Source: Saccostrea cucullata (taxonomy: Eukaryota). From it: DNA of 64,000 bases. A model generated the notes under the pieces. The model ran no database searches and was not told where the DNA came from. It saw only the letters and a list, made by a program, of their open reading frames with translations. A program made the translations under genes and the position numbers. Where the stretch lies: NCBI RefSeq assembly GCF_032062105.1, contig NW_026929220.1:62001-126000 (forward strand). The letters run 5' to 3'. Numbering within the stretch: position 1 is the stretch's first letter; each line of letters begins with the position of its first letter. This document shows positions 576 to 38,412 of this stretch, piece by piece.

Positions 576-3500
576 TGCCCAGCAAGCCTTGGCTGGAATT
601 CACCACACAGATCCCGCTACTGGTGCTCCAGCAAAGAGAATGCTCTTTGACAGTAAGTGCATTATGTTTCAGAACACTGCTTGTCATTTATTCAAAAGTG
701 AATTTTAGCAAATAGTCTATCCCATAGAAGGTTGAATATTTCATTATGGATACTTAATACTTATAACCACTGGTTTTGAATCCTTCTTTCAAAACGTTTT
801 AAATGTATCAAAACTTCTATCATATGTTTGTATTTGAATATTATTTAATAAAATTTTATCTTTTAGAGAAATAAGAAGTCAAGATATCAACAAATCAAAA
901 TTTTGCTCAACGTCTTTTCTTATTTTAAAGTCTTTGATCTTTGTTCATCACTATTTGACGCCTTTTTATAGGTGATAAAAGATAGTAATGATTGATTCAA
1001 TCTTTAGGAAAACAGTTAAAGTGATATAAATATATTTCTACAAATAATTCATATACTATTTATTATCTAGCATTCCTGAACAGCCAGGAAGCTCATCGCG
1101 TGATCGATCAGCTGGTAGAAACCTTAGCAACCGACGATAACGAGGCTAAATGTGAACAGGAATGCCACATCCTGATCGCCAGTCAGACCTCACTTGTCCA
1201 ACATCTTTGCCCCTTCCTGTGTCATTCGTAAGTTGTGAAGACTTTAAGAAAGTTTTATACAAAATGTACTATGGTTATGAATTCTTAAGAAATACCTTGC
1301 ATAAGGTACACGAAATATACTAAGATGAAACATGTGGAGATAACGAATAGTATTTAAGATCAAAAGTCCATAAAACAATTCAAAATAGGAGCACAGCGAG
1401 CAAGGGCATCCAAAACATCACAGATTTGATCAGGTGCCATGGAAGATTCCCAGTCGACAGGGGGAATAACTCCAGCTAAAAAATTATTTTAAAAAAATTA
1501 AACCAGGAGTAGAGCAAACATGGACCTCAAAAACATTAGAGGTGGGATTAATTACCATAGGGGGTGGATATTCCCTTTTGATAGACAGCACCCATCGTGT
1601 GCGCCTGTCATGATCGGGAAATGACGGAAAAATCCGTCGACAATTCAAAGTGGAAATAATGGTCTAGAAATAATATGAGAAACGTCAGTCAGCATTTGAC
1701 TAAATGAAAGATTGTTTTTGCCGGCATGTAATTGAAAAAAAGTTGCATGATTATGTTTTCTTTCAGAGCTGTTAATGCCTTGAATAACCTTCATAGCCCC
1801 CAGACCGCTTCAACATCCCCAGCAAAGCGCATGCTCCTTGACAGTAAGAATTTCTTTACTTATTCACCTAAGAAATTTGAGATTTAAAAAAAATGCTGCA
1901 AATAAAAAACACTGATTTTTATTTGATGTGTAATCAGATTTAAAACAAAAATGAGTAAAAGTTCTCATAATGTTGATAAACGAAATTGATGAATAAATAT
2001 CCACTGCAAATGGTGAAGCCGAAACTTTTCTTGGTGCCTCTTTGTATACATAAGTTGAAGAAAATTTTCCTTAGAACGCTTAGGTTAAGAGAATGTTTTG
2101 CGCTTGCTTGCATAATGTACTTATAAAAATACATGTACAAGACTTTTGTAAAGAAGAGTTAATTTCAACCCTTACAAACACTTCTGTGAAATTTAGTCTT
2201 TTTCATTATTAATTATTAATTATTCTCCTCAAATGTTGTCAGCTTTCCTGAACACAGAAGAGACCTCCAAGATCATTGACCAGCTGGTGACAACTCTTGG
2301 ATCAGATGACTCCGAAATTGCCTGTGAGAAAGAATGCCACGTGCTCATCACTGACTCTACTTCCGTTTTCCAGCATATGTGTCCTTTCTTATGTCACTCG
2401 TAAGTCAACAAAGAACGCAATTTTATTATTTTTTAGTTGTTTTTCCATTGCAATACCACTGCTTTAATTTTTCTTAATGTCATTACTTATATAAGCAAAA
2501 AATAAGGAAACAAGGGAAAAAAACACTTGTTTAGTGATTTGATTTCAATTTGTGTTTAAAGAGCTCAGGCCATCATTAACAACTTTCACCATGCACCAGC
2601 ACCAGCCACTTCTGGCACAGTACAAAAGAGATTTCTAGTTGACAGTAAGTGGTTATATTTGTATATATTGATAAATGTATTTTGTTTAAGATTTCCACAC
2701 ACACATTTATTTTAGTATTGAATTGGAAATTTCATTTTGGTTCACTTCATGCTTTGAGAGGATCCCTGTTGAGTAAAATGGTTCGTATCAGAGATATACG
2801 GAATTTAATTCAATATCAAAATTATATACACCAAACATTTTTAACGAATACAAAAATAAACTACTCTTCTCCATATTAATTTAAGAAGAAGTGATTTATT
2901 TTTTAATTTTGTCCTTTATACTTTCGAAATGTAAATTAAATAGAATTTATAAAGACACAAACTGAAAACTTTTTAATCTTGCTCTTCGTTGTTCATATTA
3001 AGAGAAAATTTAAGTACACGTATATGTCTACATAACAATTGATTTTATTCAGTTGAAATCAATTTCTGCAAAGATCTGTTTATATTCAGTGAATATTAAA
3101 TTGATAATCTGACTTCATTGCTCTGTTTTAAAGCTTTCTTAGCCAACCCCGAGGTCAACGTCTTGGTAACAAGTTTGGTGGCTGTCCTCGGATCAGACCC
3201 AACAGAGCAGGCTTGTGAAAACGAATGTGTCACCATGATTCATGCTGACAACGTCCTGCACCATCTCTGTCCGTTTGTCTGTCATTCGTAAGTTTCTTTA
3301 TTGACATATATTTGCACAGTTTTGAACATGTATTATTTTTGTGTAAATATTAATATGCGTTTGAATTTACAGATTCCAGCAACTTGTGTCAAAGGTTCAC
3401 TTGAACCAGCCAGCTGCTAACCCATCCAAGAGGTTCCTTATCGATTGTAAGTAATTAAGACTACTTTCATTAATAAATACTTAATGAAAGATTTGCGAAA

Positions 3501-14679: not shown

Positions 14680-16158
14680 CTCATCAAAATGTTTACTTTG
14701 TATGCCTTTGATATGCCAAGGAGCAGAGAAAAACTTTCAAAGAAATAATGCATTTTCACTACACATTCAAAACATCCCCACCCTTACACCAAAACCCATG
14801 ACACATGGTAATGAATTTTAACAGCCTTGGAAGAGGTACCCCATCATCATCATAGCTCTTCTCATAGTTGATTTTCAAAGAATTAACAGATTTTCACTTG
14901 ATTATCAACACCCCCATGAGAAACAAATCCCCTCATCCAAGGATCATGAATTTAAAAAAAATTAGAAACACAAGAAACCATGACCTGGGGGCCATGAAAT
15001 TCACAATTTTAAAAGAGGCACTCTTGTTCATCATAAGCATAATTAAGTTCGTTTGTTTAATACCCAGGTGCAGAGTAGAGGATTATCAAAAAAAAATTGA
15101 TACACATTCGCAATTTTTAAGATATAGCCCCACCTTAGCACTAGAGCTCTTGATCCTTGGGCAATAAAATTTACAAATTAAGAAGAGGCTCACTTGCTCA
15201 TCATAACTGTGTACTTAGTTTGTTAAATATCCAGAAGAAGAGATTGTGATTTTCATAGAATAATGCATTTTCACTTTCTGATTAGTATAGTCCCACCCTG
15301 GCACTAGAACCCTTGACCCTGGTGCCATGAATTTCACAATTTTAGACGAGACACTCTTGCCTATCATTGATATGTAGTTTGTTTGTCCATTTGATACCGA
15401 GGACCAGAAGAGTAGATGTTCAAAGAAATCATGCATTTTTAATGCATAGTGAATAGAGCCCTGTCCTTGAATCCTGACCAAGGTGCCCTGAATTTTACAA
15501 TTTTGGAAGAGGGTCGCCATATTCATGATAACTATGTAGTTAGTTTGTTTGTTTAATACCCAGGAGCAGAGAATAAGATTTTCAAAGAGTTGTTTTATTT
15601 TCAGTATATAATCAATTGAGCCCCCATCCTTTCCACAAGAACCTATGGCCCAGGGGCAATAAAATTCACAACTTCTCATCATAGCTACATAATTAGTTAT
15701 TTTAGTTGATACCCAGGAGCAGAAGATGAAATTTTCAAGGAATTGATGCACTTTCACAATATTATCGCTAGAGCCCCACCCTAACTTTGGAACCCCTGAC
15801 CCCGGGTCCATGAATTTTTATAATTTTGACTGAGGCCTCAATGCTTATTACAATCATGCCGGCAGTTTGACTGCGTGATGTCAAATAGTGAAGAAAAAGA
15901 TTTATAAAGGTTGAATTGATTTTGGTGGTTTTTGCCCCGCCTCTCATGTCCGAGGGGGGCAGAGACCATGAAATTCACAATTTCTATTCCTCTTAACCCA
16001 TAGATGAACTATGCCAAAGCTGGCTGAAATTGGGTAAGTGGTTCCAGAGAAGATGCAAAATATGTTCAAAAGGTCAGACCGACGAACGACAGACGACGCA
16101 CGACGAAGGACGAAAACAGATAGCAATATGTCACCTGAATGTCTTAGATGACCTAAAA
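14680..16158 (-). mobile_element. Helentron-associated non-autonomous element (HINE-type) with degenerate ~165-170-bp central satellite array
   Basis: Reverse-complement homolog of 40411-42304: 5' end TTAGGTCA...GGTGACATATTGCTATC plus (CGT/GTCC)-type microsatellite at 16070-16158, and tandem monomers at ~14980-15860. Confidence 0.75.
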
Positions 16159-16399
16159 TGAAACCATTACTTTAAGGTACTTCCAAGGTAAACCGATTGT
16201 AATTGTTGATTTCTTTACTACTCGACATTTTGCAAATACTAACTTGATTTTAGGACTCCATTCATTGCGTTAGTATCCAAGGGACGAATTATAGATATAG
16301 AATTATAGTGTGATATAAATGAGTTTGCAAAATGGCCATCGTCATACCTCTGGCAGTATATAAAATATAATTTTTATCAATGAAATAATTTATACACTT

Positions 16400-17150
16400 A
16401 CCTTTTTGTTTAATACTTTGTTATATGACCTGTAGATCAAAGAACACATTGAATTTTCCTGGTAATGCATGTACATAAACTCTAAATATAGTTCAAAGGG
16501 AGGCTACTGATTCGCTCCAGATCATTTGCTTTTCTGACCTGATATGTCATCCTTCGAGCACGGATTTTGAGCACTCTCCAGACAATTTCAATTATATTGA
16601 AATCAGACTTTTTAGGGGCCTCGTTTCAAACAATTTGAGAAAGCGGAGACATGACAGGGCATTGTCTTCTAGCCAAAGGAAAGTCTAGTTGGTGTATGAC
16701 GAGCGATCACGGTCCATAAACATTCATGAAGAGTTAATAAATATTCCTCGCTATTCATGTTCCCATCCATATTTTTAAGGGTTCCTACTCCATTATAACA
16801 TATAAAACCCCAAAACATGAGGGAGGCTCGGCAGTTCGTTTTCAAATCATCACGCAACCCGCCACATTCAGGACGATTTTTTTCCTCTCTCTTCCTCTAG
16901 ACATGAATTTTACCGTTATTTTCAATAGCCATCTTATTCAATTACTGAATATTACAGATGAACAATGATTGTTTACTGTTCAGTGTAACTTCTATCGACC
17001 AAATTGAGTATTCCTCTCTCTTTCCACACGTAAAGTTACAGTAGTTATTTCTTTTAGAATCTAAAAAAGCATTCTTAAAACCTTCCTTTGATAATCGTAT
17101 GTGAATTGTTCTAAGATATTCATTAGATCCTGGCATTGCATCTGGTTATA
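16400..17150 (-). mobile_element. Degenerate Tc1/mariner transposase remnant
   Basis: ORF 16669-16857 has SLMFWGFICYNGVGTL..DGNMNSEEY...LW.VIARH (Tc1 DDE core). Downstream P..SDFNIIEIVWRVLK resembles the WPxxSPDLNPIENxW motif. Broken by stops and frameshifts. Confidence 0.8.
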
Positions 17151-19882: not shown

Positions 19883-22800
19883 ATGCAGATTTTAATTCTC
19901 TTTATTTTGCCGGCTGTCTTTGGGGCATCTGGTAAGTATTTTTATGAAAGAAATGAAAACAAACCATTTTTGAAATTGTGCTGATATGTCGTTTGAATTT
20001 AATCATACTTTTTTCAGTTCCCGAAAAAAGATTGCTCTTTGACAGTAAGTATTAATAACTGCACTAATGATATTGTCAAGATTCACATAATTTGCTGACA
20101 ATGTAAATTGCTTTTTTAAACATCATTTAATTTTATGATAATGTTGTATAATTTTGCTAAAAAAATAAAGAAAAAATAACTATAGTCTGAAAACAACATA
20201 GAATATTCACATCTTTTTTCAGCAAAAAGAGTCAAAAGGAATGAACAATATATTAATTCTTCGTTTTGACATTTTTTTAATATTCAAAGTCTAATAACTA
20301 GAACACTTTTTTCATATTAAGTCTCAATCATATATTTTTCTCCATTTTGAGTCTAACCCAATATGTTTTTCCCAACTTCTAAAGACCATCTGGATATACA
20401 CCGTTACTTTATTTTCCTTTTTTGTAGAAATACATGTATTAATCATTCATGAAGAACAATTTCTATAATTTTTTTCCAAATTCAGCCTTTCTTAATGGGG
20501 AAGAGGCCAGACATCTAGTTGATCAACTGGTGGAGTTACTTGCTACAGATGACAACGAGGTTAAATGTGAATCACATTGTCACACACTCATTGCAAACCA
20601 ACAGTCGGTTATGCAGCATTTATGTCCCTTCCTGTGTCACTCGTAAGTAGTAAAAACCATCAAAAGTCTTCATTTCAAATTCGATGGAGAAAAAAAAATT
20701 AAATTTTCTGATACGTGCTAGTGAGAAGAATTTTGAAGTTTTTACCACTTTTTTTATATACTGTAGACGTACTTTTTTTTCCAAGGGGTCATAATTCAGC
20801 GGAATCTCAATTTCTGTTAAATTTGCAGGAAGAAAATTACGCTGATTTTCTAGATTGTCTCTATATGCCTTAGTTTTAAATTAGGTACGCTTGGACACAT
20901 TTCCGCGGAAAATTTGTGACCGCGTACATAGCGTAAATTAATACCACGCGGAAAAAAGTACTTCTACAGTAGTCAAATTACATCGACATATCCATGGTAC
21001 TCAAGTTATCAGTATTCATTCAGATGATAAATTTCCACTTCAAATCATAATGAAAGAGAGTTGTCATTTTCTTCACTTGTTCACGGAAAACAATTACTTA
21101 TCGTGCAAATAACTCACGTTTTCATAATTTTCTACTTTCCTTAGAGCCCAAAATGCACTGAACCACTTACATAGCCCAAACACAGACCCAACTGTTACAG
21201 GAAAACGTCTTGTCCTCGATAGTAAGTTTGCTTATCATGTTTTAATTACCTTTTCTCATGTACTTGAAGCCATAAGAGTGTATGGAATATATACCTAGTG
21301 GATCTTCACAAAGGATTACAATTTACTTGAATCTCTTTATTAGTACCCTACCGATGAAAACGGAGGGGATTATTTATTTCCTCTGCTTCTGTCTTTACGT
21401 TCGTCCGTCTGTCTGTCCAAGTGTTTGTTTGTCAAGCTGTCCTACTTCTACTTGTTTTTTCCGCTTTTTTTTCTAAACGTTTGCAGACATTCAGCTGTAT
21501 TGTTGTATGTGAATGTAACTTTATAAGTTACATATCAATATTAAAATGTTGTTTCGCTACATTGATTTTTGATAGAATGATGGGATTTTAATTTTTCGTA
21601 ATGGTTTTAGATCGGTTCATGCTGCGCCAAATTCCGATGGTCAACATGATAAATATGAAGTGATAAAAGACATTGAAAAATGAGTTGAATTTTCGTCTTG
21701 ATGTGGTTCATTTCTTATATATGTTATATGCATGCACAATCACAATTTTCACATCAAGCAGATAAACTTGTTCATATCTTTTGCATATTATAAAATGACA
21801 CTCTAAAGAAAAAAGGGACCCGGTAGGGGATGTTTATTGCTTGTGCAATACTCTCAAAATGCTTGTTCTTCTCGCAGACTTCTTAAACACAGCAGAGACA
21901 GCTCATCTTGTAGACCAGCTGGTGGCTAACCTGGGAACAGACGAGAACGAGGCTGCCTGCGAGAAAGAGTGTCACGTGCTTATTCGAGATTCTACATCTG
22001 TTTTCCAACATATGTGTCCTTTCTTGTGTCACTCGTATGTGATTTTTTATAGTCATCTTTAAATTGTCTTTTTCTTTTATCATTCTTTAATGTTACACAT
22101 CTTTAATCTTAAATATTGTATCGTTGTAACAAATACAATGATAATATTGTTTTTAATATTTCTTACATTGGTAAAATTGAACAAAAAGTGATACCTAAAG
22201 GTTAAAGGAGCAGTCGCATCATCTCGGGTCATAGGTTGGAAAAGCAACCTCGAATGTATAAAATGTATAAAAATTCATACATTTCCTGTTTATTCAGTAT
22301 AGGATTGAAGGAGTTTGAAGTCCTTTCTTTAGTATATTTTAGGTAATATAATTACATTGAATACACTTTAACTCAATATTCCATAGATAAAAGGTCTACG
22401 TGCATTTATTTCAAAGATCGTGAAAGGTGGATTGTCATGGCATCTACGTAATACATTCAAGGTTGTTTTACCTCTAGTCTTAAAGGCCCTAGATGTTGCC
22501 ATTGCTTAGGGAGTATTATACCTTCATTTTTGGTTTTGAATAGCCATTTATTTATCGTTTTCAAATAGCGCTCAAGCTGTCATTAACAGCATCCATCACA
22601 CACCAAGTGGATCTCCCACAAAAAGATTTTTGGTCGACAGTAAGTGACTGATTTTTTATGGATTTTATTCACGTTATAAAAAAAATGTTTTAAGATCGTC
22701 TATATATAAGTAAAAAACACTCAAATGTGACGTAAAACAGCATACATCCAATCATCAATCTCTCTGTTTTAGCCCTTTTGGCAAACCCAGAGGTCAATGT

Positions 22801-24542
22801 CCTAGTAACAGGTTTGGTGGATGTCCTTGGATCGGACCCAACAGAGCAGCAATGTGAGAGAGAATGTGTCGTACTGATGCACGCCGATAATGTTCTTCAC
22901 CATCTTTGTCCGTTTGTCTGTCATTCGTATGTTTGTTTTTTAATCATTTAATTACATGTTATGCCGTGGTGTCAAAACTAACAAAAAGAATTATCAATAG
23001 TGAAAACTTTTATTTTTGTACAACGCAGGAATTGATTGTTTTCTGTAACAGATTATCCTTTCAATATTTCTGCGCTGAATTTTATTCTAAAAAAAATAGT
23101 ATTCTCCTAAAGATGATATATCCCAGTGGCTTCATTTTTGTGCTGCGCAGATATATAGAATGTAACTCATAATCGAAGTGGATTTATTAAAAGTAATAAC
23201 ACCTAGCGTAATAAATAAAAAAAAATAATTCTTGTGTGATCCTTTTTTTCAACTATCTATGAATCATATATATGAAGTTTTTTGTTAATTCATGTGTCAA
23301 TTTTTATGCATAGTATTTCATGTTAAGTCTTCTTTTTTTGCTTTTAAGATTCCAGCAGTTGGTATCTAAGATCCATTTGAATGCACCAGCATCCAACCCA
23401 TCTAAAAGATTTCTTGTTGATAGTAAGTATATAGAGTAAATCAAATATCGTTTTCAAATAGTCAATTCCACAAAAATAAGTCAAAACGCTACTCTGTGAA
23501 CTGATATGCTCTTGGTGACAGTTTTTACAAGCATATAAATGTTTAAGAAAAACGTGTGGAACAAATATATATACTAGTAAGTAAAATTGGAATAAAAAGG
23601 GGTCAAACGTCTCAGTGACATAGACGAAATATGTTAAATTGGCTTCGTATCAAACATGTTTGGTTTTTTTTCCATTTTAAGGACATACGCAAGGTACCTT
23701 CCCTACTGATAATGTTTCAAGATATTTTTGATTTAAGATTATTGTGCCATCAGATGTTCATAGATAAAAAAATCAGTATGCGTTGCCAGGGTTTTTTGGA
23801 AGATATCAAATTATGAAAATTTTTGCATTATTCAAAGAAAGATATATAAAAAATTACAAAACAAAATTTGTTTTAGAAGAAGTGTACAAATCCATATATA
23901 GACATTAAAAGTACTGCACACAGGTCCTTAATTTAGTAGAACTCTTCAACTCCAGGGAAGAACCCAATAAAGTTCAAGCTACGTTGCGTATGACCTTAAG
24001 GACGATATGCAGATTGTAATAATCATCAATATTTTTTCTTAAAATTTACATATATATCATTTTTGTAGCCCTCCTTCACAACAACCCTGATGTCGCCGTC
24101 CTTGTGAACACATTGGTCCAGACTCTAGGATCAGACCCCACAGAGGCTGCCTGTGAGTCCAAGTGTACCGTCGTCGTACACGCCGACAACTTCATGCACT
24201 ACCTTTGTCCTCTGGTTTGCCACTCGTACGTATTCTGTTCATCCCTGTGCCAGATTTTAGATTTTGATCAATAAAAAAATAAATAAAAGATGCTTCTCTG
24301 AAAGCATATACCCGAAAAATATCTGTATTTTAATGCTTACATATTTTGTTTTAATTTTTTTTTCATTTAAGAATTTATGTTAAAAAATATTGCATGCAAT
24401 CTAAGAAGATTTAGAGACAAGAAATCCATTTACATGTAACTTCAAAGATTTTTTTTTCATTTTTAAATTCATTTCTATCTATAGATTCCAGTCATTGGTT
24501 CAGAAGATACACATAGATGCTCCATCTGGTTCTGTGAAATGA
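19883..24542 (+). CDS. Gene 2: complete secreted 4-domain KR-cleaved Cys/His-rich polyprotein precursor (326 aa)
   Basis: Exons 19883-19931 (MQILILFILPAVFGAS, signal-peptide-like), 20018-20044 (VPEKRLLFD), 20486-20642, 21145-21221, 21878-22034, 22569-22639, 22773-22926, 23349-23422, 24069-24225, 24485-24542 (FQSLVQKIHIDAPSGSVK*). All borders are AG/GT; total 981 nt in one open frame; AATAAA at 24596. Confidence 0.92.
20759..20971. mobile_element. Short MITE in a gene 2 intron
   Basis: TACTGTAGACGTACTTTTTT...AAAAAAGTACTTCTACAGTA inverted termini. Confidence 0.65.
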
Positions 24543-25515: not shown

Positions 25516-26635
25516 TAAGAAATGAATGTAATATTTTTTTCTTTGATCGATGTATCAAAGAAAAATTTGGACGGAAAACTTCATCAATGCGCGTAGCGCA
25601 TTGATGAAAAAGTTTTCCGTCCAAATTTTTCTTTGATACATCGATCAAAGAAAAAAATATTACATTCATTTCTTATCATTTAATTATGATTTTAAATTAA
25701 TAAAATGAAAGTTTCTTTCACTTTTCTATTAAATTTATGCATCAAATACAGTGCGCACGAATACATAACCAATTAACGTTAACGTTGCTGAAAATTCAAA
25801 ATGGCTCTAACCAGCTTACCAAAAACGTTCTCAAATATTGTTGTGTGATTACCAACAGTCTCCAAAATAATTTACAGTTCTTAAGCACAAAAAAACTTAC
25901 CTGTTATGTTTTCCCTCTTGGTATATTTTCCCCGGTAAGTTATCTAAGTTCGTAAATGTAACGGGAAGCTACTCAAATATCCTAACAGTTCTAGATCACA
26001 GAAATTTTGGATTTCATTTGCGCATCTTTTCATTTGAATTTCAAACCGAATATATAAATACGTATCACAACCTGTCAATGCTGTAAAACCCTGAAAAAGT
26101 CTGCTGTCGATAGTTCAAGATTAAAGAATTCCATTCTCAATTCATGCAGTGGCGTTTTTCTCGATCGCTCGTTTCCCTCGATTTATAACAGATTTACGGT
26201 TTTCCCCGCTTTGGTAGCATAATAAAACATTTTTTCAGAGTTCTATTGTTTCATACCAGATATCTCAAAGTCAAACATTTTAGAAAAGTATGCCGAATAA
26301 ACTATTTCTTCCCTTCTTTTCCGTAACTGTTTTGTCGTCATGCAGACGATTTTAATTTGTTTAGCAAAGGGGGATAATTCAAAATGAAACGAAAGTAGAA
26401 AGTAAGTCAGGAACCTAACGGACAGGTTCCGAAATTCAGAAAAATATTTATTAAAGCAAAGTTATTTAATTATTCCTTCAAAAAGTAACCTGGAAGCGGG
26501 GAATATACATGTACCGACTGTCAAAGTAGTTCCGGCTGCTTAGTGCAACCGAACTCTAGATTTTATTGATGCAGTTATCAAAAGAATTTTTGATCCAATC
26601 AGAATCAAGTATTTTATAGAAATTAAATGATTAAT
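25516..26635. mobile_element. Non-autonomous repeat with a long terminal hairpin; second, inverted copy at ~42431-43255
   Basis: 25516-25675 is a near-perfect inverted repeat (~75-bp arms, 3-nt loop GTA). The body to CCAATCAGAATCAA at ~26600 aligns in reverse to 42431-43255. Confidence 0.7.
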
Positions 26636-28110: not shown

Positions 28111-28128
28111 TGGCCACTTGAATTGCAT

Positions 28129-29739
28129 CAATCTAATTGAAATTAGATGTTAGATCCGCTCGTATACTCGCTTCACTAACATCTAACAACATCCCATTAA
28201 GGGTCACGTCAGAGGTCAATTCTATTAACCAATCAAATCGTCGCCTGCAAAATCGTTGTATATTGTTGAAGCGAATAAGTCTAGAGGTGTTCCGAATTTG
28301 ACATCTGACTTAAAGCCCGAGATAATAAGCACCGCCTTCAGATTTACCTGGTCTGTATCCCCCTGTCAATCAAATGAATTAAGGTCCGTCATTGGGTACT
28401 TGAAATTGATTGACAGTTAGCTACTAGTCCCTGTGTATATCTCTTTTACCTTGCTTGACACGCGTGGCCACCATCAAACTAACTTTTGGTCCTCTGATGG
28501 TTACCGCTAAATTACCATCGCAATAAGGAAGCCATTTCGATGAAAACAATTTCAGCTTGATTATAATTAATTAATTATCTGTATTGCAAACATGTCATTA
28601 AAAAATGATTTTTTTATCTCATTGTATTTCAATAAAATAAATCAAGATTGTGCATATTTTCACTAATGAAAATTGCATAGGAGAATGAAATTTTGTTTTC
28701 ACTCATAAAATTTAAGAATGATTCTTGGTTTGAGACGTGGCGAAAAATTGGGAGAAAATAAGCTGGTAACACTTTTTGCATTTAACGGATAACTAAGGAT
28801 AAAAACAAAATATCTGATAAGTAACAACTTCGCCTGGACAAGTATTAAGAGTTTCTTTCTTTTCTTTTCCTTTTTATAACCGAACATTTCTTACTTCGTG
28901 GGTTGTTACCTCCGTTCAAGGTCACAGATGTTAAAAATAGTTTTGAAAGAAATACATATGTTGGCATTAATTTCATATTTTGTTTAACGTTGTAATATTA
29001 TAATCTAAATTTACTTAAAATACACACATACTTGTATGTAATTTTAAGTTTACAAAACCATCGTTATCGCCAATTTTTCACTCAGAATGTACATTTGCTA
29101 AAAATAGGACCACGCGACATTTTATACAAACGGCAAGTAACTGGTACTATTTGACCGTGATCGAAGCTCTATAAATACAATAATTATGAATAGTTTTTAA
29201 GATTTTGAAAGGGACAGACAAGGACGAGTATTTTACCTTTGAAATTATACCTGAAATTCATATTAAATGATTATTATTATTTTTTTTTTACAAAGAACTC
29301 AGGTCGTTGCTGCTGTACATGTGACGTACAACACGCCGTAGTTTTTTTTTAAACAAAAAGTCGGCCTGCGAGATTTCTGTTTGTTTGATATTAGATATGA
29401 GTCTGAAATTACGAAATTTTACAATTATCATTAATTACTATTGATATTTTTTCTTATTTACGATGTCGAATTCTACTAATTTTAAGATGAACAGTAGGCC
29501 ATCAAGCTGTACAGGTAATACCCATGGACTTCTTGTGTATACTGTTTGTGTATAGTGATTAGCGCTTCCCACGGTCTGCACGACCGTCAATGCCTCGGGA
29601 TGCCACGCATGTAAAACTAAGTCCCTCCCCTTACCTGAGAAAACCGTACGGTTAAAAATCTCGGCCTTTAACCCTCTATGGGATGTTGTTAGTGTAGCAA
29701 GTTTGCGAGCGGATCTAACATCTAATTTTAATTAAATTG
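28129..29739. mobile_element. TIR-bounded non-autonomous DNA transposon (~1.6 kb) nested in a Penelope-like tail
   Basis: ~70-bp imperfect TIRs: CAATCTAATTGAAATTAGATGTTAGATCCGCTCG... and ...GCGAGCGGATCTAACATCTAATTTTAATTAAATTG. Confidence 0.75.
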
Positions 29740-30345
29740 CACTTGCATGAACCGTTAACAGGGGATGTCTACTCCTCCTTGACACTTGATACATCTACGA
29801 AATTTCCAGGAGTCCGTGTTTTCTGTTCTTTTCACATATTTGTATTTTTTTGAACGATCAATGTTTTTTTTTCGTTATTTTCCGATAACCGACAAACTGT
29901 AGGTCAGCATGCATTTCTTATTCAACAGGTTTAAACATGTCAAACGGCATTTAAATGAAGATTGCACTAGTTTTCTTATACCTTTGTTAAATCTTATCTT
30001 AATCAACAGTTAAAATTTTGATGGAATAATTCAGTATAAAATGGGTTGCTCATAATATATGACACATCTTCATCTTACATCATAAGAAAACTTTTTATTG
30101 GTGAAAACAGGGAGGAAATGAATACTTATACGCCCTGAAGTGGCTGGATTTTTTAATATTATTATGATTTTACAGTCGTGCCGTCTACGAGTTTGATGGA
30201 AATTCAATACATGTGAAATGTAGTATTACAGGCGACATTTTTGATATTTCACATTTACTGATATTTTGATACTATACTTATATATAAGGAATTAGATGAT
30301 TTAATAGATATGTGATAGGGATTTTGATAAATTATATTTGCAAAG

Positions 30346-30692
30346 ATACCAGGCCATCATCAACGCTCTTCTTTTTGTTGACTTTTGTGGTAAATGAAAT
30401 ATGATATTTGATATTGTCATGAAAAAGAAAAAAAAAACATCTTTATTTCCTAATTTTTAAGCCTTCCTTATCCAAATATCATGGTATCAGTATCTAATTC
30501 TTTATATTTCTTTCTTTGTATTTAGCCTTTTTTGCTTTCTCTTGTGTTCAGTGCCTTGGAAACTAATTTTTAGGCGGTCCTTGGATCACACACAGGATCA
30601 AAGATACTGAAAGGTCTCGACAGAGTGAGATGGTTACATTGATGTATAGCGGTATCGCGTTGCACCATCTTTGCCCCCATTATCTGGCATCC
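30346..30692 (+). pseudogene. Second, older relic of the polyprotein family: degenerate linker exon and B-type domain exon
   Basis: 30346: ag|ATACCAGGCCATCATCAAC...GTTGAC (QAIIN...VD with the KR segment deleted). 30526-30692: ag|CCTTT...GCGGTCCTTGGATCA (AVLGS)...GTTACATTGATG...TTGCACCATCTTTGCCCC (LHHLCP), with an in-frame TAG and lost Cys. Confidence 0.65.
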
Positions 30693-30819
30693 ATATATAT
30701 TTTCTTTTAAATCTGTTCAATTTTCATTCCTTGCATGCAGTCCATATTAATGTACTTTTTGAAAAAAAATAACAGTCTGTGATAGTGCTTTGAAAATGTG
30801 ATTATTAACTCATATATTT

Positions 30820-31095
30820 AAGGTAGTTCAGTCACGGAGCACTCGCTCTGTGATGGATCAGATCCTTTCAGCGACATACCAGAGTTAATGAAAAGCAAAG
30901 CAACTGTTCATTCGTAAAGCACTCGGCATATTGAAATGGAATAGGCTTTGGTTCAATATGATTCATTTAGTGTTACAAGTAAATGACCTTGTTTACGAAG
31001 TATACAGGTCTAAATTTGAAGCTGTTATCCGACATACTATACCATCTAAAATGAGTGGGAAAATCTTGCAATGAACGTTAAACAGCAATACATTA
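30820..31095 (+). mobile_element. Degenerate SINE-like element
   Basis: tRNA A-box-like start (GGTAGTTCAGT) and 3' end ...GAAAATCTTG...ACGTTAAACAGCAATACA, similar to the reverse complement of the ends at 50180 and 50540. Confidence 0.45.
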
Positions 31096-31871
31096 ATCGT
31101 AAAAGTACAACTTTTTACTATTATTTATTATCATTTACCTTGATTTGATAGTTTATAAAAACTTACTTGCATTTTTATTTATTTACATGTAGTAGAAAAG
31201 CAAGGTTTTATTGAATGTTTTTAATATATCATAACATCTGCCCAAAGCCTAATTGACATTTTTTTTAATTTTCTCCGATGTATACATTTTACATATTTCT
31301 ACAAATGTTGATGGAGGAAGGGTCGAACCCAATTCAAGTATGTTCCTCTTTTTTCTGTTTATCTTGTCTAGTTTTGATATGCCTTATTCTGCAAAATTCC
31401 CATGGAACATTCAACCAAAAACCAAAGTGCTGCAGTATATCTAATAAAGTGCATTTTCAAATTTTGAAAAAAAGTCAGTCATATCAACTTCTGAGTGCCT
31501 AATTTGATATAACATGGAGAATATTAAATGGATTAAAATGATACCTGTCGACAAGCCATATTATGTTAGTCAATTTTCGTTTTTTTTTTCCAAAAGAAAA
31601 AAAAACTTTCTAGATATGCTCTGGCTTAAAAGCAAAACTTTATATTGATGCAAGTGATTCTGCTGAGCAGAAACGCCAAAAAATGATAGATAATAATTTG
31701 CGAACAAATCACTTTTACAATTGAGTCTTTATTCGACATATCAAATTTACAATTATTTTGATCACATTCCATAGCTTATGAAGTAATTTTAAAAACGTTA
31801 TTTACTTAACTCTCCTTCATATTGCAGGTATGTAGAACAATTCCAAAATGAATGAAAATTTCCTTAAAAAC

Positions 31872-32020
31872 ATATTCTTATCACTGTATAACCTTGCGTG
31901 GAGTTAGTCAGCTGATATAGCCTTGCACGAAGAAAGTACATGACCTACCAATGATTTCACTGTATGCATAAAAGACCTAACGAAAGGCTTGTCTTTCACT
32001 TACTCTTGGAGAACTCAGAG
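31872..32020 (+). promoter_or_regulatory. Putative core promoter and non-coding first exon of gene 3
   Basis: ATATTCTTATC (31872), ACATGACCTA (31938), CATAAAA (31967), Inr-like TTCACT (~31995), donor AGAG|GTAAAT at 32020/32021. Parallels gene 2. Confidence 0.55.
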
Positions 32021-32254
32021 GTAAATGATGTTTAATATTTCTTAACATTATTCAAATAAAAATCAACCGAGGACGTTAATATAAGTAAATTATGTTTGAA
32101 TGTATAAAAAATGTTTTGAGTATCCAGAAATTAGAAAATATAATTCAAAAAAAACAAAAAAAAAAAAAACAATTATACTAACAAACATCACACATGAATC
32201 AATGTTTTGTAATATTTTCATTTTGATATAGATTTTTTTTTCTTTTTAGGAACA

Positions 32255-35200
32255 ATGAAGTTTTTAATTTTATTCTGTCTTCCTGCAGTTTTTGGGGCAG
32301 CTGGTGGGTGATTTGTCGCCTAAAAAATGAATTCATTCGAATAAAAATAACGTGATTTGATTTGGACATATCATTTTACTTATACTACTTATTTTACCTC
32401 TTTTTCAGTTCCACAAAAGAGAGTTCTCTTTGACAGTGAGTAGGATTTTCCATTTTTTTTTTATAACACACTTTGGGAAAAGTTAAAACACTCTCCTTTT
32501 TAGTAGTTTTTAATAGATATCTAGTACTGAATCAAGAAAGATTTAGAGGAAAAATAATGTAAAAGTTTCAGAGTTTCAGAAAAATAAGATGTGACCCATG
32601 GAAAGCACCATAGAATTATCGTATGTGGCAGGTATTTCTGTCACAAAACTTGAAGAGTTTAGATGAATTTCGATAAAAGAAAATATGACACTACTGTAAA
32701 AGTGAAATGTCAGTAAGACGCACATTTAGCGAATTCTACTTCAAAATTGATATTTATATTGATATGTAGCTTCAGCATTTTGAAAATGCTTCGAAAGAAG
32801 CTATTTATTTTATTCATAAAAAAAATTATTTACAAAGTGAATGGAATTGAGCATCAGGCAAATCCTATTTAGCTCTCTCCCCCCAAGGTCAAGATGAACA
32901 CATACAATATATAGGTATGAAAGTAAATAGACAAAAACGCTATAAATAATTGCAAATAACAAAAAAGGGATTTTTAGCGATATTCAATTTTAGCAATCTC
33001 TCAGCACCCTCGCTAATAATGCCAAAATTAAATTCTCGCTTTAAAATGCACTTAAACGTTTTTTTGTTGCTGTTGTTTTTTAAAGGACCCTTTTTAAAGT
33101 AGTTCATGTGCACTTTTTGTATGTTTTACCTTATTTACCTTTATTTGAATTTTCGACAATTGAATTCTTCTCCTCCAAAATTAGATTTGGTAGGCTATCA
33201 AATTTTTTGCTCAAAACTTACTTGCAGCTAAAAATTCAAGAAATGTTTTTACGTTAATTGTGAATTATATTGTGTAAATCACACAAACTTTTGCGTAAGC
33301 ATACTTATCATGGATATATCATTCTGCTCTGATTAAGAGTAGTACCTACGTTATCCATGAAAGGGTCTATTGTAAAGTGAATTATAAACTCATTGGTTAA
33401 TATACAGAATGTATGATTTCTTTCAACAGCATTTTTGAATGGTCCTGAGGCACAGCATGTAGTCAATCAATTAGTCACATTTCTTACCACTGAGGACAAC
33501 GAGGCCAAATGTGAACAAGAGTGCCACGTCCTCATCGCTAACCAGCAGTCTTTAGTGCAGCATTTGTGCCCATTTATGTGCCGAGCGTAAGTAAAATGCT
33601 ATATGAACACATTTACATTTTTTATGATTGAATACAACTCTTTCGGGTATTTTCTTAATCTACAACTTTACATTGCTCCAGGACTGTGTCATCTGAAAAA
33701 AAAGTATTTTCTAAATTATGCTTCAATACTTGGTTAAAAAAAAACCTGTTTTCACCGCCCAAGAGTTTATCTTTATAGCAGTTACGAGGAAGATATTTTA
33801 TACGTACAAATACAATATAACGATTGAAAAATGAAAGGATATTCTTATTTTCTATAGATAATGATTTAAAAAAGAACAATAATCCCTTATGATATATCAT
33901 TTTTTTCAGCTTTTCTCAATGGGGAGGAGGCTAGACGTCTGGTTGATCAGCTGGTGGAGGTACTAGCTACAGATGATAACGAGGTTAAATGTGAATCACA
34001 TTGTCACACCCTTATTGCAAACCAACAGTCGGTTATGCAGCATTTATGTCCCTTCCTGTGTCACTCGTAAGTCAAACCCAAGACCTTAAATTTTATCTAA
34101 ACTTTTTTTGTTTTCTGGAATAAAATTACTAGGTGCTTTTGGTGCCAAATTCGGCCTCGTGTTCAAATGAAATGAATATTTCCTCAAAATTCTTTCAGAG
34201 TGCCTATATTTTCAATTAATAACTCTACCAAGATTAATAAATATTTATTATCATTGAAAAAAGTACCATAGTTTATGTGAGGAAAGCGGTACTTTGGCGT
34301 TGCCTTATTCGTTGATAAATCCACCATACATGTATAATTCAAGAGGTTTATCAAATCTCATTTCCGGAAATGCACATTGAGACGTCCAGGTGATAGCATA
34401 AAATGACCATGCTAGTTCAATCGATTTTTCTTAAATAAAGAAACATCTTTTAATTATCTGGAATTATTTTTGGATTTGATTTTTAAAAATCTGAAAAAGG
34501 AGATGGGCGTATTTGGCATGTGATCTGCAGGAATCATTTGTACGAAACATTTATGATTTGAATGTCCATGATTTGGTTGGCTGACGATACATATAGCTGG
34601 TCAAATTTTAAAAACTGCCATAGGGTTTTTTAAAGTTAAGTTTGAAATACCTTGATAGATTGTAACATTTATGACCTTTTATATTAGGAGGTACAATAAC
34701 ACAGTAATGCTTCATCGAAAAAAAAAAATGAACACCAATTAGATAAACTAGGCATATATGATAAATGTACATCAGTGCTCATGTACATCAAAGTTTAAGT
34801 AGAATAGAAGATTGGATTTGATTTCGCTCTCGGTGCAACAGAACCAAAATTTATCTAATTCAAAATTTTGATAAATCAGTATATAAAACGAACCTGACTA
34901 AAGAATTGACTTTTGTATTTAATAAAAATAAATAATGCCCCATCGAGACTCGAACCAAAAAAAATATTCACCTATAGTGCAATGCGCAGGTAGCCCATGT
35001 TACTGAGCTATTGCCGTTACACGATTAGTGCATTTTAAAAAGAAAAAGAAGCACCACATTTCCACAGCTGTAATTTTTGGGAAAAATGATTTTTTTTATG
35101 GTCCCTGGGTCTTCTCTCCATTTTTTTTTTTTATAAATGTATGTTCGTTTCTTTGAATTAAAATGCACACAAAAAACGTTTCAAAATCATAGAGAGTGAG

Positions 35201-37631
35201 AATGAAATTAGAAAAGCGTGTTTTAAAATGTACAATTTTGTACGAAATGTCTGATCTAGCCAATTTTCAAGTTAGTTCGTAGCAAATCAAAACTCACTTA
35301 CTGGAAAATATTTTTCTTTCCCATTTCACAGGAACCCGATTAATAAAAAAATGTTAAAATTTCATGTGACACGACGATAAAATTTTCACTTTTATGTATT
35401 TTGCTGAATGCCAATATTTAGTTAAACATGCAAAATGTTTATAGCCCTTTTTTCGACTTCGTTTGTAAACTTTTGTATCGAAATGTAACATATTAAAAGA
35501 AATGTTACTTTTTTCTTGCAGTTTTGTATAGCATCTGTTAATTATGATCATTGAATTTGTGTGTATACATGTACGTGAACATATATCATTATATACATGT
35601 ATGGTCTTCCGATTTTAGGCTTTCACATATTTTTAGATTTCATTTTCAAAACCCACAGTTTACTTCTTCTCCGTTGGTACTTACCATTACTTTTCCTTGA
35701 CTTGATTAACAAATAAGAACACCTCTATTAACCTATTAAAACATTTAATTTCCGTTTCGATTTTTAACGATTTTTCCGGATATACGCATTTCGTATTTTG
35801 ACACTATAAATAGAATACGTGTAACAGTCACATTCTAAAAGTTATGGTTCATATTTTATTTTTAAGCAAGGAGATTTCCGACATTTATATTCTATGTAAG
35901 GATCTAATTCAGCGTAAATATCATTATTTGAAAATTCCCTGGGCCAATTATTTTACCAAAGCACCTTATATCAGATCTAATTTATCCTTCATAGTCATTC
36001 CTTATATTTTCCTTAGTGCTCAGACTGCTTTGGCTAACCTACACAGCCCTAACACAGACCCCACTGCCACCGGAAAGCGTCTGGTCCTCGACAGTAAGCA
36101 CTTTGGACTTTCAAATATTTTTCTCTCTCGTTCTGTTCTGACACGTATTAATAATTATACAGCAAAAATAAACTCAGTTATTTGGGGGAAAATGAACATT
36201 TTTTTATTACTAGATTGGTCTTTTTGTAGCTTTCTTGAACACCCAGGAAACTGCCCATCTAGTTGACCAGTTGGTTGCTACTCTTGGCTCTGATGAAAGC
36301 GAGGCTGCATGTGAGAAAGAATGTCACGTGTTAATCAGAGACTCAACTTCCGTTTTCCAACACATGTGCCCATTCTTGTGTCACTCGTAAGTGAAAAAAA
36401 TACCCATAGGAAAATTTCTATACACCAAGATTATGTAATAAATACAACATAAAGTTAAAAAGTTTTGCTTTTGTCCCCAACTGTAAAGTCAGACAAGTGA
36501 ACTCTTAAATGTTTGATGCATAACAAAGCTCAATTTAATTACGTTGATTTCATGATAGATGTTCTGTTTCAGAGCTCAAGCTATTATTAACAGGGGACAC
36601 ACCACTACCCCTCCACCTGCCAAACGCTTAGTTTTGGACAGTAAGTTTTAAAATTACTTTTTGTATGATCAATATGTATCTAAACTACAGTATTGTAATA
36701 TACATAGGCTAGAAAAAAAATTTCGCTGGTGAAGAGTTCATGTTTATAATATTTTAAAAACTGACTTTCCAGTAAATAATTTTCAAATAAAAGAAAGACA
36801 AACATGGTTGTCCATTTTAAATATTAATGACTAAAACCAATTTTTTATCCAATCAAATGACGCGTTACAACCAAAATTTTTTTAACAGCTTTCCTGAACA
36901 CCCAGGAGACAGCTCACCTAGTTGATCAGTTGGTCGCTACCCTTGGTGCTGATGAAACCGAGGCTGCATGTGAAAAAGAATGTCACGTGTTGATCAGAGA
37001 CTCAACTTCCGTCTTTCAGCACATGTGTCCATTCTTGTGTCACTCGTAAGTAATTAAAATTAAAGAAAGGTCAATCTGTTTGCTCATCCAGAGACATTCA
37101 AAACAAATAACATAAGGCGATCTTTAACAATTGTTTGGTTGCCTTCTGACAAGTTACTGACTAAAATTTAAAAAAAAAACTTCCTTTTTTATTTAAAGTC
37201 ATTCATCTATTTAAAGTCTTTTCATTATATTCGTCTTATCCCGTCGACAAAGATGTAAAACTTTTCTAGAAAAAAAAATTCCTTAGCCTACCTTTTGCCC
37301 TAATAATTTTACCCAGAGTAAGGAGAGGGCAAAAAATCATTATTTTAAAGATGACGTTAGCCTCAAGTTTTAAAATAGTCAATTTTTATTGTTTCACATC
37401 AATGCTGTATAAAAATTGCTTACCGTTATTGACTAAGAAAAAGTAATACATGTTTCAGTGTTTCCAGATACTTTTCCAGTCACTGTAAATTTTATATATT
37501 CTTGAGTGAACTCTTACTGATGATTCTGCTGGAATGAGTTCTGTTTATTTCCTTTTTGTTATAGAGCTCAAGCTATTTTTAACAAAGGACAAACCACTAC
37601 CGCTGCTGCAGTAAAGCGTTCGAATCTTTAA
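32255..37631 (+). CDS. Gene 3: secreted 3-domain KR-cleaved Cys/His-rich polyprotein precursor (252 aa) with two alternative first-domain exons
   Basis: Exons 32255-32303 (MKFLILFCLPAVFGAA), 32409-32435 (VPQKRVLFD), then either 33430-33586 or 33910-34066, then 36017-36093, 36230-36386, 36573-36640, 36889-37045, 37565-37632 (AQAIFNKGQTTTAAAVKRSNL*, TAA 37629-37631). 759 nt open frame with either alternative exon. Probable 3'UTR exon from 37789 with AATAAA at 37887. Confidence 0.88.
33430..33586 (+). CDS. Gene 3 alternative domain exon 4a
   Basis: 157 nt, cag|...|gtaag; TFLNGPEAQHVVNQLVTFLTTEDNEAKCEQECHVLIANQQSLVQHLCPFMCRA, all four Cys intact. Confidence 0.8.
33910..34066 (+). CDS. Gene 3 alternative domain exon 4b
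   Basis: 157 nt, cag|...|gtaag; TFLNGEEARRLVDQLVEVLATDDNEVKCESHCHTLIANQQSVMQHLCPFLCHS, nearly identical to gene 2 exon 20486-20642. Confidence 0.8.
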
Positions 37632-38412
37632 AGTAAGTTTTTTTTTTTTGGAATTTAACTTATTTCACGAGTGCAAGTTTTCAGGATATTGTTAAGATTT
37701 TTCTTTTTCTTTTTTCTTATTTGTTTTTCAATAAATGGTTGAATAAAATGTAAATGTCTATTTGTGAAAACTCCTGTTTTTCCTACAGATTCAATGATCA
37801 ACAATATTTTCTGATGAAAAGAATTCAATTTATTGAAGGAGCGATTTATGTTATGAAGTTGTGTGTTTTGTACTCAAATTGAAAAAAATAAATATATTTC
37901 CTTATAACACAGAGTTTTTTGTCAGCAAAAATAAAGGCTACGTGTATACATTCGAAAAGCTAAGGGTACGAATTTGTATTTCTAAGGGCTTGTAAAAATG
38001 TATTCTCTGTCATGTACGGGCCAATTAAGGCCCACAGTTTTGAATGGGTATGCATACATTGTCCACATGTAAATGATACAGAAATAATCCATAGCATGAA
38101 TTTGATTTTTTTTTTAAAAAATCAAATTGATCTCTAAATAAAATATCAAAATGCATTACAGGTGAAATAAAATCTTAAACGTCTGCATCTGGATTCTCTG
38201 AAAGCACAATAGATTTATGAATTTGGAGGTTTGATTCGATTCAATTTTTTAGTTGCACGTACAATACACTGAGCATATTTTTAATAACTTAAAAGCGCTC
38301 ACCCTACGTTTAATTTCTTTTATCCTCTATCCGCATGTAAGTTTTGTTGTAATTTGTGGTACTTGATGTTCTGCTGGGGTTGATCTAACACTAATATCAT
38401 AATGGCTAAATC

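Follow-up and report, generated by a model that had tools for sequence, protein, structure and literature searches.

The stretch of Saccostrea cucullata DNA analysed here (the window, 64,000 nucleotides within a 380,223-base contig) carries a tandem cluster of genes for what are probably secreted polyproteins, cut by a convertase at K/R-R into stapled helical peptides with a ligand or binding role. We give this reading a probability of about 0.7. As the preliminary description of the locus had proposed, three tandem paralogous spliced genes lie on the + strand together with two decayed relics. A six-frame scan of the window found 14 stop-free matches to C-x3-C-x10-18-C-x3-C, all on the + strand, which confirms the fourteen intact domain exons of that description in number and in place. 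Each of the 14 matched the family profile with an E value between 1e-23 and 1e-27, and in the alignment they show 32-73% identity to the first sequence and 10 invariant columns. All predicted exon borders are AG...GT except the starts of first exons and the ends of last exons. Domain exons run from phase 1 to phase 2 and spacer exons from phase 2 to phase 1; the domain-plus-spacer cassette is phase-symmetric and the number of units therefore changes through cassette duplication. In all three genes the signal peptide, judged by inspection, occupies its own exon and is followed by VPx(K/R)R, the leaders having 15-16 hydrophobic residues and small-residue ends (VFA-A, VFG-A). Gene 1 comprises seven units, gene 2 four, and gene 3 three that can be joined in frame.

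The start of gene 1, which had been supposed to fall outside the window, was located 873 bases upstream of it (L018:9127), where the leader MKFLCILLLPAVFAA is followed by VPNRR. One additional domain exon upstream of the window brings the gene to 7 units in all. Its exons are:

L018:9127-9172, outside the window, signal-peptide exon
L018:9272-9298, outside the window, exon with VPNRR and MLFD
L018:9582-9738, outside the window, domain exon (unit 1)
576-652, + strand, spacer exon with the tail of unit 1, KR and the first 4 residues of unit 2
1071-1227, + strand, domain exon, unit 2
1767-1843, + strand, spacer exon with KR
2243-2399, + strand, domain exon, unit 3
2562-2644, + strand, spacer exon with KR
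3134-3287, + strand, domain exon, unit 4
3373-3446, + strand, spacer exon with KR
3695-3848, + strand, domain exon, unit 5, cassette copy 1
4322-4413, + strand, spacer exon with KR, cassette copy 1
4921-5074, + strand, domain exon, cassette copy 2, absent from the RefSeq protein
5555-5646, + strand, spacer exon, cassette copy 2, absent from the RefSeq protein
6042-6195, + strand, last domain exon
6818-6866, + strand, terminal exon (FQSLVQKVHVNAPAQ, stop)

An AATAAA follows the terminal exon at 6915. The model equals RefSeq LOC134280156 (P0103) if one copy of the duplicated cassette is skipped. The second domain exon of this cassette is 98.7% identical to the first (3695-3848), and the duplication is recent. 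An assembly artefact was rejected as its source, since the copies are only 91.6% identical.

The model of gene 2 is identical to RefSeq LOC134280155 (P0109). Its leader is MQILILFILPAVFGAS followed by VPEKR, and that of gene 3 is MKFLILFCLPAVFGAA followed by VPQKR, in agreement with the hydrophobic leader and VPxKR previously assigned to both genes. The exons of gene 2 are:

19883-19931, + strand, signal-peptide exon, from ATG
20018-20044, + strand, exon with VPEKR and LLFD
20486-20642, + strand, domain exon 1
21145-21221, + strand, spacer exon with KR
21878-22034, + strand, domain exon 2
22569-22639, + strand, spacer exon with KR
22773-22926, + strand, domain exon 3
23349-23422, + strand, spacer exon with KR
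24069-24225, + strand, domain exon 4
24485-24542, + strand, terminal exon (FQSLVQKIHIDAPSGSVK, stop)

Those of gene 3, and the two relics, are:

32255-32303, + strand, gene 3 signal-peptide exon, from ATG
32409-32435, + strand, gene 3 exon with VPQKR and VLFD
33430-33586, + strand, gene 3 domain exon A, ending ...CPFMCRA
33910-34066, + strand, gene 3 domain exon B, with no spacer exon between A and B
36017-36093, + strand, gene 3 spacer exon with KR
36230-36386, + strand, gene 3 domain exon
36573-36640, + strand, gene 3 spacer exon with KR
36889-37045, + strand, gene 3 domain exon
37565-37631, + strand, gene 3 terminal exon (AQAIFNKGQTTTAAAVKRSNL, stop)
12958-13074, + strand, relic domain exon, 64% identical to a gene 1 unit, with a 2-codon insertion and the last Cys lost
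30567-30677, + strand, weaker second domain-exon relic (tblastn E 0.007, 30% identity)

AATAAA occurs at 37730, 37742 and 37887, after the terminal exon of gene 3. This gene has 4 domain exons, only 3 of which are joinable in frame: a direct join of exons A and B shifts the frame, whereas the gene 3 orthologues do have an intervening spacer exon. No candidate for a hidden spacer was found in any frame, either between A and B or elsewhere in the window; in its assembled form gene 3 can use at most one of these two exons. No gene 3 protein was found in the protein collection searched. The earlier suggestion that short exons hide these genes from gene calling stands in part, but genes 1 and 2 are already represented by RefSeq models. 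A search with gene 2 for RNA sequencing runs of S. cucullata listed none.

After removal of KR, the predicted units measure 71-80 residues, slightly shorter than the 75-82 aa first claimed, and are acidic (pI 4.4-5.5) and His-rich. The Cys pattern C-x3-C-x13/14-C-P-x2-C, a twin CX3C with four Cys, holds as described in 14/14 domain exons, and Pro, Ala, Ser and Thr abound in the stretches between domains. An AF2 model of the unit, built from a 66-sequence alignment and of moderate confidence (pLDDT 68), contains helices at 2-7, 10-23, 29-39 and 46-65, with a disordered tail behind them; the four Cys lie in the last two helices (29-39, 46-65). The unit is predicted to be a small helical bundle, in which a short N-terminal helix starting with F/L/M-x-x-D would precede a long amphipathic helix with G-S/T-D-x-T/S-E at its end, a helix-loop-helix hairpin with C-x3-C ... 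C-P-x2-C, presumably held by two disulfide staples, and a probably disordered tail rich in the same four residues as the linkers. Both the disulfide pairing, expected to be C1-C4 and C2-C3, and the fold are what we infer for the units. Foldseek comparison of the unit model with the PDB yielded nothing at E <= 0.001, a structure search of the ESM Atlas returned just bacterial helical proteins with TM ~0.5, and a feature search of the same atlas with one domain exon gave nothing usable. Eclosion-hormone clusters were returned from the ESM Atlas for a Haliotis single-unit protein (0.79); this is below noise level and was not taken as evidence.

The searches used single exons, with P0103 and P0109 standing for the whole proteins; exons were joined only to translate the gene models and to compare them with these two proteins. 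The homologue search, in which the profile was made from the narrow alignment A1 of domain exons, matched 76 proteins. About 30 of those that carry a name were checked, and all are mollusc proteins with the label 'uncharacterized'; homologues are annotated in this way in at least 20 mollusc species. The family takes the form of polyproteins of up to 9 units and of single-unit proteins and, judging from these matches, is present throughout bivalves and snails, from protobranchs to limpets, abalone and whelks. No significant Pfam match was obtained for single exons or for 66 units; the sub-threshold matches to P_C10, BSMAP and zf-TAZ were judged to be due to chance. Profile search of PDB sequences gave no significant E value either, and the matches to a caulimovirus virion-associated protein and SNF5 (E 0.04-0.18) were judged spurious. 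No paper on the family was found in the literature by LOC, XP or UniProt identifiers, motif strings or SRA run identifiers. The claim that the Cys pattern and domain fall outside known families is supported by these searches. The locus itself is not 'unrecognised', genes 1 and 2 being RefSeq models with annotated homologues.

The units are under strong purifying selection: paralogous domain exons compared with each other gave dN/dS values of 0.02-0.11 or a saturated dS, and alignment of the introns is no longer possible. They also keep position-specific orthology with Crassostrea, e.g. 89% for the last unit. Whole orthologous ORFs of C. gigas are uninterrupted on 1.0-1.6 kb run contigs in at least 10 runs; because ORFs uninterrupted on such short contigs can be read as spliced mRNA, the family is apparently transcribed in this species.

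Secreted precursors of several units, with a dibasic pair marking each unit border, were recovered as originally described, both at this locus and across the family. In P0103, 6/6 dibasic pairs fall exactly on unit borders and none elsewhere; in P0109 as in P0103, every border is KR or RR and no unit contains an internal dibasic pair. The same confinement to unit borders is seen in the scallop, Littorina and Babylonia homologues. Of the 113 distinct junctions in the family, 106 carry a dibasic pair (KR in 89), mostly followed by F, L or M, and this conservation extends from protobranch bivalves to snails. Homologues with one unit only, 86-128 residues long, were found in Mytilus, Mya, Dreissena, Ruditapes, Sinanodonta, Haliotis and Patella; most of them start with SP-APxKR|F-L-x-D, and their existence shows that one unit is a functional entity. 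Border-only dibasic pairs, conserved junctions and single-unit homologues together make the case for cleavage, as far as it can be read from sequence, stronger than the preliminary description could know, and they argue strongly that the precursors would be cleaved into single peptides.

In the proposed processing, removal of the signal peptide would be followed by cleavage on the C-terminal side of every K/R-R by a subtilisin-like proprotein convertase. As the sites are plain KR and lack an Arg at P4, they suggest an enzyme of the PC1/3, PC2 or Kex2 type and not classical furin. The two basic residues would next be trimmed off by a carboxypeptidase, so that each precursor would yield a short VPx propeptide together with 3-7 non-identical peptides, each 71-80 residues long. 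It is unusual for folded peptides of ~8 kDa to come from multi-copy precursors, which counts against cleavage. A precedent from oyster is the Cragi-EH precursor, which contains two copies of a folded Cys-hormone with a dibasic site between them (PMC8398477).

It is improbable that the proteins stay intact as secreted multi-domain components of mucus, matrix, shell or adhesive, with linkers that merely happen to end in KR. The Pro/Ala/Ser/Thr stretches do resemble O-glycosylated linkers, the units are acidic as in many shell-matrix proteins, and homologues also occur in marine metatranscriptome catalogues, which was counted in favour of uncleaved proteins. However, dibasic pairs are restricted to the borders across classes, the single-unit genes keep KR before the same N-terminal motif although they have no linker function to serve, and the VPxKR directly after the signal peptide also precedes the first unit. 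Within the literature searched, there was no in vivo peptide detection of processed ~8 kDa units.

Among known systems, the family precursors are like the neuropeptide and prohormone precursors that are cut at dibasic sites, such as those of molluscan FMRFamide and oyster EH (PMC8398477), in having a signal peptide and KR-bounded related repeats, a hydrophobic residue, often F, right after KR, and a number of units that varies between species. Unlike the short linear neuropeptides, the family units are, as modelled, folded four-Cys helical domains of 71-80 residues, and Gly-KR ends only some of them. No family member was present in the portions of the supplements of five mollusc neuropeptide surveys that were available; within that coverage, this speaks against a neural peptide, or shows at the least that the family is not recognised as one.

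A structural parallel is found in the plant alpha-hairpinins (Sm-AMP-X, Tk-AMP-X, MBP-1; PMC7191063), which share CX3C-Xn-CX3C on a helix-loop-helix and a many-module precursor; there, a signal peptide and cassettes of 5-12 modules give rise to single peptides (PMC7191063; PMC11591084). Whereas alpha-hairpinins are plant peptides of about 30-50 residues and usually basic, the family units are animal, acidic and approximately twice as long, with two extra predicted helices and a disordered tail, and their cleavage would be at KR. Sequence searches (Pfam, PDB) detected no homology between the two, and the likeness is for this reason most likely a case of convergence.

This parallel is also what speaks for the preliminary description's view of the units as host-defence effectors, AMPs or toxins, analogous to the modular plant precursors: C-x3-C-x13/14-C-x3-C on a helix-loop-helix is the alpha-hairpinin signature, and the plant precursors are likewise cut into single peptides (PMC7191063; PMC11591084). 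An effector role nevertheless fits poorly and we give it a low probability, considering the acidic pI of 4.4-5.5, a size nearly double that of alpha-hairpinins, the dN/dS of 0.02-0.11 or saturated dS, the position-specific orthology, and a deep conservation across Mollusca under very strong purifying selection. Bivalve AMP families are usually fast-evolving. Searches of Pfam and PDB also showed no sequence homology to a known AMP or toxin family.

The twin CX3C helical hairpin of the units is shared with the small Tim/twin-CX3C mitochondrial proteins. Small Tims, which lack a signal peptide, are taken up into the intermembrane space of mitochondria; a mitochondrial role was rejected because of the secretory leader, and neither exons nor units matched zf-Tim10_DDP in Pfam.

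The units may alternatively be diverged SAPLIP modules of a polyprotein in the prosaposin or naegleriapore style, binding lipids or perturbing membranes, e.g. in digestion or defence at acidic pH; we regard this as unlikely, though less so than intact matrix proteins or defence effectors. Like NK-lysin, granulysin, saposins and caenopores, the units are secreted acidic helical modules of about 75-80 residues, their acidity recalling saposins in particular, and multi-domain precursors are known in that group (prosaposin, naegleriapore). The VIA-align search against representatives placed five SAPLIP structures in the top 50, with a similar predicted helix arrangement: Ac-SLP-1 (Z 5.4, rmsd 2.6, 60 residues), NK-lysin (Z 5.2), saposin D (Z 4.8), granulysin (Z 4.7) and caenopore-5 (Z 4.2). 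These scores of 4.2-5.4 are, however, within noise for small helical bundles: the best overall hit (Z 6.0) is a ribosomal protein, and VIA-align's own noise range for such bundles is higher still. The model itself has a pLDDT of 68. NK-lysin was the sole small secreted protein among the PDB profile matches (E 0.29, likewise within noise) and ranked 9 in Foldseek, but a second profile (A4) recovered no SAPLIP and did not reproduce this match. SapB_1 and SapB_2 were matched by none of 6 exons (E up to 10) or 66 units (E up to 1) in Pfam. As to the Cys, SAPLIPs have six (C1-C6, C2-C5, C3-C4), in contrast to the four in twin CX3C of the family units. In one heterodont subfamily of single-unit proteins, helix 1 and the C-terminal tail each carry an additional Cys (8/8, versus 0/11 of the others), a pair that fits a SAPLIP-like N-to-C tether, yet the six Cys of this subfamily are arranged differently. 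Prosaposin is not known to be cut at KR sites.

For the predicted peptides, our best guess from their sequences is a conserved extracellular role as ligand or binding protein, hormone- or pheromone-like or a saposin-like binder of lipid or metal. They are acidic, His-rich and strongly conserved, which favours such a role over that of a fast-evolving cationic AMP or toxin. Put more broadly and only tentatively, the conchiferan-wide twin-CX3C four-helix peptides, encoded singly or as KR-punctuated precursors with up to nine position-specific isoforms, may constitute a new molluscan signalling or binding system, either a class of peptide hormones or pheromones or a branch of saposin-like lipid binders, with a precursor logic convergent with that of plant alpha-hairpinins.

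No name, Pfam model or paper was found for the family; the RefSeq gene models and the 'uncharacterized' homologues were already known. Among molluscs are disease vectors and major aquaculture species, yet a large share of the peptides that they secrete has no name. Once defined, the family could be given a Pfam-type model, and dozens of labels that now read 'uncharacterized protein' would be replaced. Its processing signature is clean and testable, and the defined N-termini of the predicted ~8 kDa peptides would make them straightforward targets for peptidomics, tissue localisation and recombinant assays. The locus illustrates how duplication of a phase-symmetric two-exon cassette alters the number of units, and the family would represent a second, independent case of modular CX3C-hairpin precursors, outside plants.

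A six-frame scan of the window revealed 14 matches to the pattern C-x3-C-x10-18-C-x3-C without stop codons, all on the plus strand and each in an open stretch with the C-terminal end ...C-P-x2-C-(H/R)-(S/A). These domain stretches are directly preceded by a polypyrimidine-AG and end in TC followed by GTAAGT or GTATGT. In their alignment (51 columns), identity to the first sequence is 32-73%, and L14, V15, L18, E24, C27, E28, C31, C46, P47 and C50 are invariant. Between successive domains lies one short spacer exon, which codes for the last part of the unit (A/F-Q-x-A/L-...-H-...), a Pro/Ala/Ser/Thr stretch and K-R, and then adds four residues, (F/L/M/V)-x-x-D, and one base before GTAAGT or GTGAGT. 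As domain exons run from phase 1 to phase 2 and spacer exons from 2 to 1, a domain-plus-spacer cassette can be duplicated or lost with the frame kept. In a domain-profile search of the whole 1.17-Gb assembly, matches were confined to this gene cluster, the elements of which are listed below.

Elements of the precursor gene cluster (L018 is the sequence upstream of the window that carries the start of gene 1)
L018:9127-9172, 9272-9298 and 9582-9738, plus strand: first three exons of gene 1
6866, plus strand: end of gene 1
12958-13074: decayed relic between genes
19883-24542, plus strand: gene 2, 10 exons, 326-residue translation
30567-30677: decayed relic between genes, weaker
32255-37631, plus strand: gene 3, four domain exons
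33430-33586, plus strand: domain exon A of gene 3, intact
33910-34066, plus strand: domain exon B of gene 3, intact

The preliminary description of a cluster of spliced multi-domain genes was accurate, and the cluster is real: besides the 14 domain matches, AG...GT is present at all internal junctions of the models with explicit coordinates, and the gene 2 translation is identical to P0109, "uncharacterized protein LOC134280155 [Saccostrea cucullata]". The leaders of the genes (MKFLCILLLPAVFAA, MQILILFILPAVFGAS and MKFLILFCLPAVFGAA) each occupy their own exon and are directly followed by V-P-x-(K/R)-R. The leader exons open at an AG acceptor just 5' of the ATG, so that a 5' non-coding exon probably lies further upstream. 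The terminal exons encode FQSLVQKVHVNAPAQ (gene 1), FQSLVQKIHIDAPSGSVK (gene 2) and AQAIFNKGQTTTAAAVKRSNL (gene 3), with poly(A) signals 50-250 bases 3' of them. A 160-base perfect-register palindrome (25516-25675; 95% identity to its own reverse complement) is found between genes 2 and 3.

The start of gene 1 lies 873 bases before the window; with all 16 exons, the gene encodes 7 units in 567 residues. Without exons 4921-5074 and 5555-5646, its product is exactly P0103 (LOC134280156, 485 residues). These two exons, absent from the RefSeq protein, are the second copy of a two-exon cassette repeated in tandem with its introns (3462-4671 versus 4666-5906, 91.6% identity, 1243 bases), of which the RefSeq protein has one copy only. 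Between the copies, the domain exons show 98.7% identity (dN 0, dS 0.06). The duplication is real and fairly recent; an assembly artefact is ruled out by the 91.6% identity of the copies. Unit number also varies among oyster species, being 6 or 7.

Gene 3 is anomalous, as its exons A and B are separated by 323 bases with no spacer exon, and joining A to B breaks the frame. Its orthologues P0104 (S. echinata) and P0002 (C. gigas) have a short spacer at this position, ...AAQQALSGIHAGKR LVFD... (...AQQALSGIH.GKRLVFD), of which no counterpart was found in any frame of the window; the spacer exon was therefore most likely lost from the S. cucullata gene. Either one of the two exons is skipped, which would give 252-residue, three-unit products, or the gene is defective. 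Searches of the protein collection found no S. cucullata product of gene 3. Compared with the first domain exon of gene 2, exon B has a dN of 0.017 and a dS of 0.35.

Among paralogous domain exons, dN ranges from 0.02 to 0.39, dS is at saturation or no lower than 0.35, and dN/dS is 0.02-0.11 where computable; the similarity ends within a few bases of the exon borders. Orthology of units with Crassostrea is position-specific, the last unit of gene 1 being 89% identical to the last C. gigas unit and unit 4 being 82% identical to its unit 4, which indicates that each precursor is a fixed series of distinct isoforms and not a homogenised repeat.

In database searches, the genes were represented by their individual exons, and the whole proteins by P0103 and P0109. 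A profile of the domain exons was searched against 1.84 billion representative proteins at E <= 0.001 and gave 76 matches, 41 of them below 1e-10. Four long, low-scoring matches (P0033, P0052, P0062 and P0069) were rejected as unrelated repeat proteins. All named matches are molluscan and labelled "uncharacterized" or "hypothetical". They come from bivalves (Crassostrea/Magallana, Saccostrea, Argopecten, Mizuhopecten, Ylistrum, Solemya, Mercenaria, Mya, Dreissena, Ruditapes, Mytilus and Sinanodonta) and gastropods (Littorina, Batillaria, Babylonia, Haliotis and Patella); further members are unnamed proteins from marine metatranscriptomes. The family comprises polyproteins with 2-9 units and single-unit proteins of 86-128 residues, and the two forms are homologous (hhalign probability 99.9%). 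For the C. gigas orthologues (322 and 479 residues), complete ORFs run unbroken on 1.0-1.6 kb contigs from at least 10 sequencing runs; with about ten introns in these genes, spliced mRNA is the simplest reading of the contigs.

The proposal that these proteins are KR-cleaved precursors is well supported by comparison within the family. In P0103, 12 of the 20 Lys and Arg residues form six dibasic pairs, all exactly at unit borders, and pairs are likewise restricted to borders in scallop, Littorina, Babylonia and metatranscriptome members. Family-wide, a dibasic pair occurs at 106 of 113 distinct inter-unit junctions (KR at 89), and 71 junctions are followed by F, L or M. In most single-unit proteins, a signal peptide and A-P-x-K-R precede the F-(I/L)-x-(D/E) start of the polyproteins, so that KR marks a conserved mature N-terminus even in proteins with only one unit. 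We infer from these sequences that the precursor chains would be cut into units. Arg at P4 distinguishes classical furin sites from PC1/3-, PC2- or Kex2-type sites; the dibasic sites here lack it, which points to putative cleavage of the latter type rather than by classical furin.

The predicted trimmed peptides have 71-80 residues, a pI of 4.4-5.5, 6-10 acidic and 0-5 basic residues, 4-7 His and 4 Cys. Across the family, the near-invariant residues form the pattern G-x-D-x-x-E-x-x-C-E-x-x-C ... C-x-x-x-C-x-x-x-Q. An AlphaFold2 model from a 66-sequence alignment, of moderate confidence (mean pLDDT 68, pTM 0.47), has helices at 2-7, 10-23, 29-39 and 46-65 and a disordered tail. Both CX3C pairs lie on the last two helices, which would fit a disulfide-stapled hairpin. 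In the heterodont single-unit subfamily (Mya, Dreissena and Ruditapes), extra Cys residues in helix 1 ("LKCD") and the tail ("xCGG") always occur together (8 of 8 sequences versus 0 of 11 others), implying a putative third disulfide and suggesting that the N-terminal helix packs against the C-terminus. A CX3C pair lacks one Cys or both in P0010, P0023, P0037, P0050 and P0051 (e.g. ...CEQAGHKY...VPLLCHSFQ...), from Mercenaria, Mya, Dreissena and one unnamed metatranscriptome member. These retain the GSDxTEQ and SFQxLV motifs, and the disulfides thus appear dispensable for the fold.

Other features of the window were also recorded. Long ORFs of a repeated ~45-residue motif (...ENLLLCSWVLNKLTKYIVM...SKIVNFMAPGSGV...) at 15215-15811 (minus) and 40706-42367 (plus) flank the cluster in opposite orientation; they have no significant Pfam match and are probably a satellite or transposon-derived repeat. 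ORFs at 46476-54664 (minus) match HEPN_DZIP3 (E 2e-24), nSTAND3 NTPase (E 4e-26) and ankyrin repeats (E 5e-16), and look like a STAND-type gene with no relation to the precursor cluster; genes of this type have expanded in bivalves. Short ORFs at 16669-17136 (minus), without a Pfam match at E <= 0.01, resemble by eye a Tc1/mariner-type transposase fragment (...FWGFICYNGVGTL...MNSEEYL...).

As the preliminary description had supposed, the family has no significant match to a characterised one in Pfam or among PDB sequences. In structural searches, saposin-like proteins scored Z 5.4 (Ac-SLP-1), 5.2 (NK-lysin; Foldseek rank 9, sequence match E 0.29), 4.8 (saposin D), 4.7 (granulysin) and 4.2 (caenopore-5), whereas the best match overall was a ribosomal protein (Z 6.0). 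Because such scores fall in the noise range of small helical bundles, the Cys pattern differs and the Pfam test for saposin-like proteins fails, a saposin-like fold is no more than a lead. Plant alpha-hairpinins share the Cys motif of the units and likewise arise from modular precursors, of 5-12 units (PMC7191063; PMC11591084); however, size, charge and lineage are unlike and homology is not detectable, and the resemblance is therefore read as convergence.

The suggestion of an unrecognised effector is half right: the family has been neither named nor studied, yet it carries annotations in many genomes and lacks the appearance of a rapidly evolving weapon. Units acting as antimicrobial peptides or toxins would sit poorly with their acidity, strong constraint and deep conservation. 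By analogy, neuropeptide and peptide-hormone polyproteins cut at dibasic sites would be the closest functional counterpart; one oyster precursor carries two copies of eclosion hormone with a dibasic site between them (PMC8398477). However, no family member appears in the available supplements of five mollusc neuropeptide surveys.
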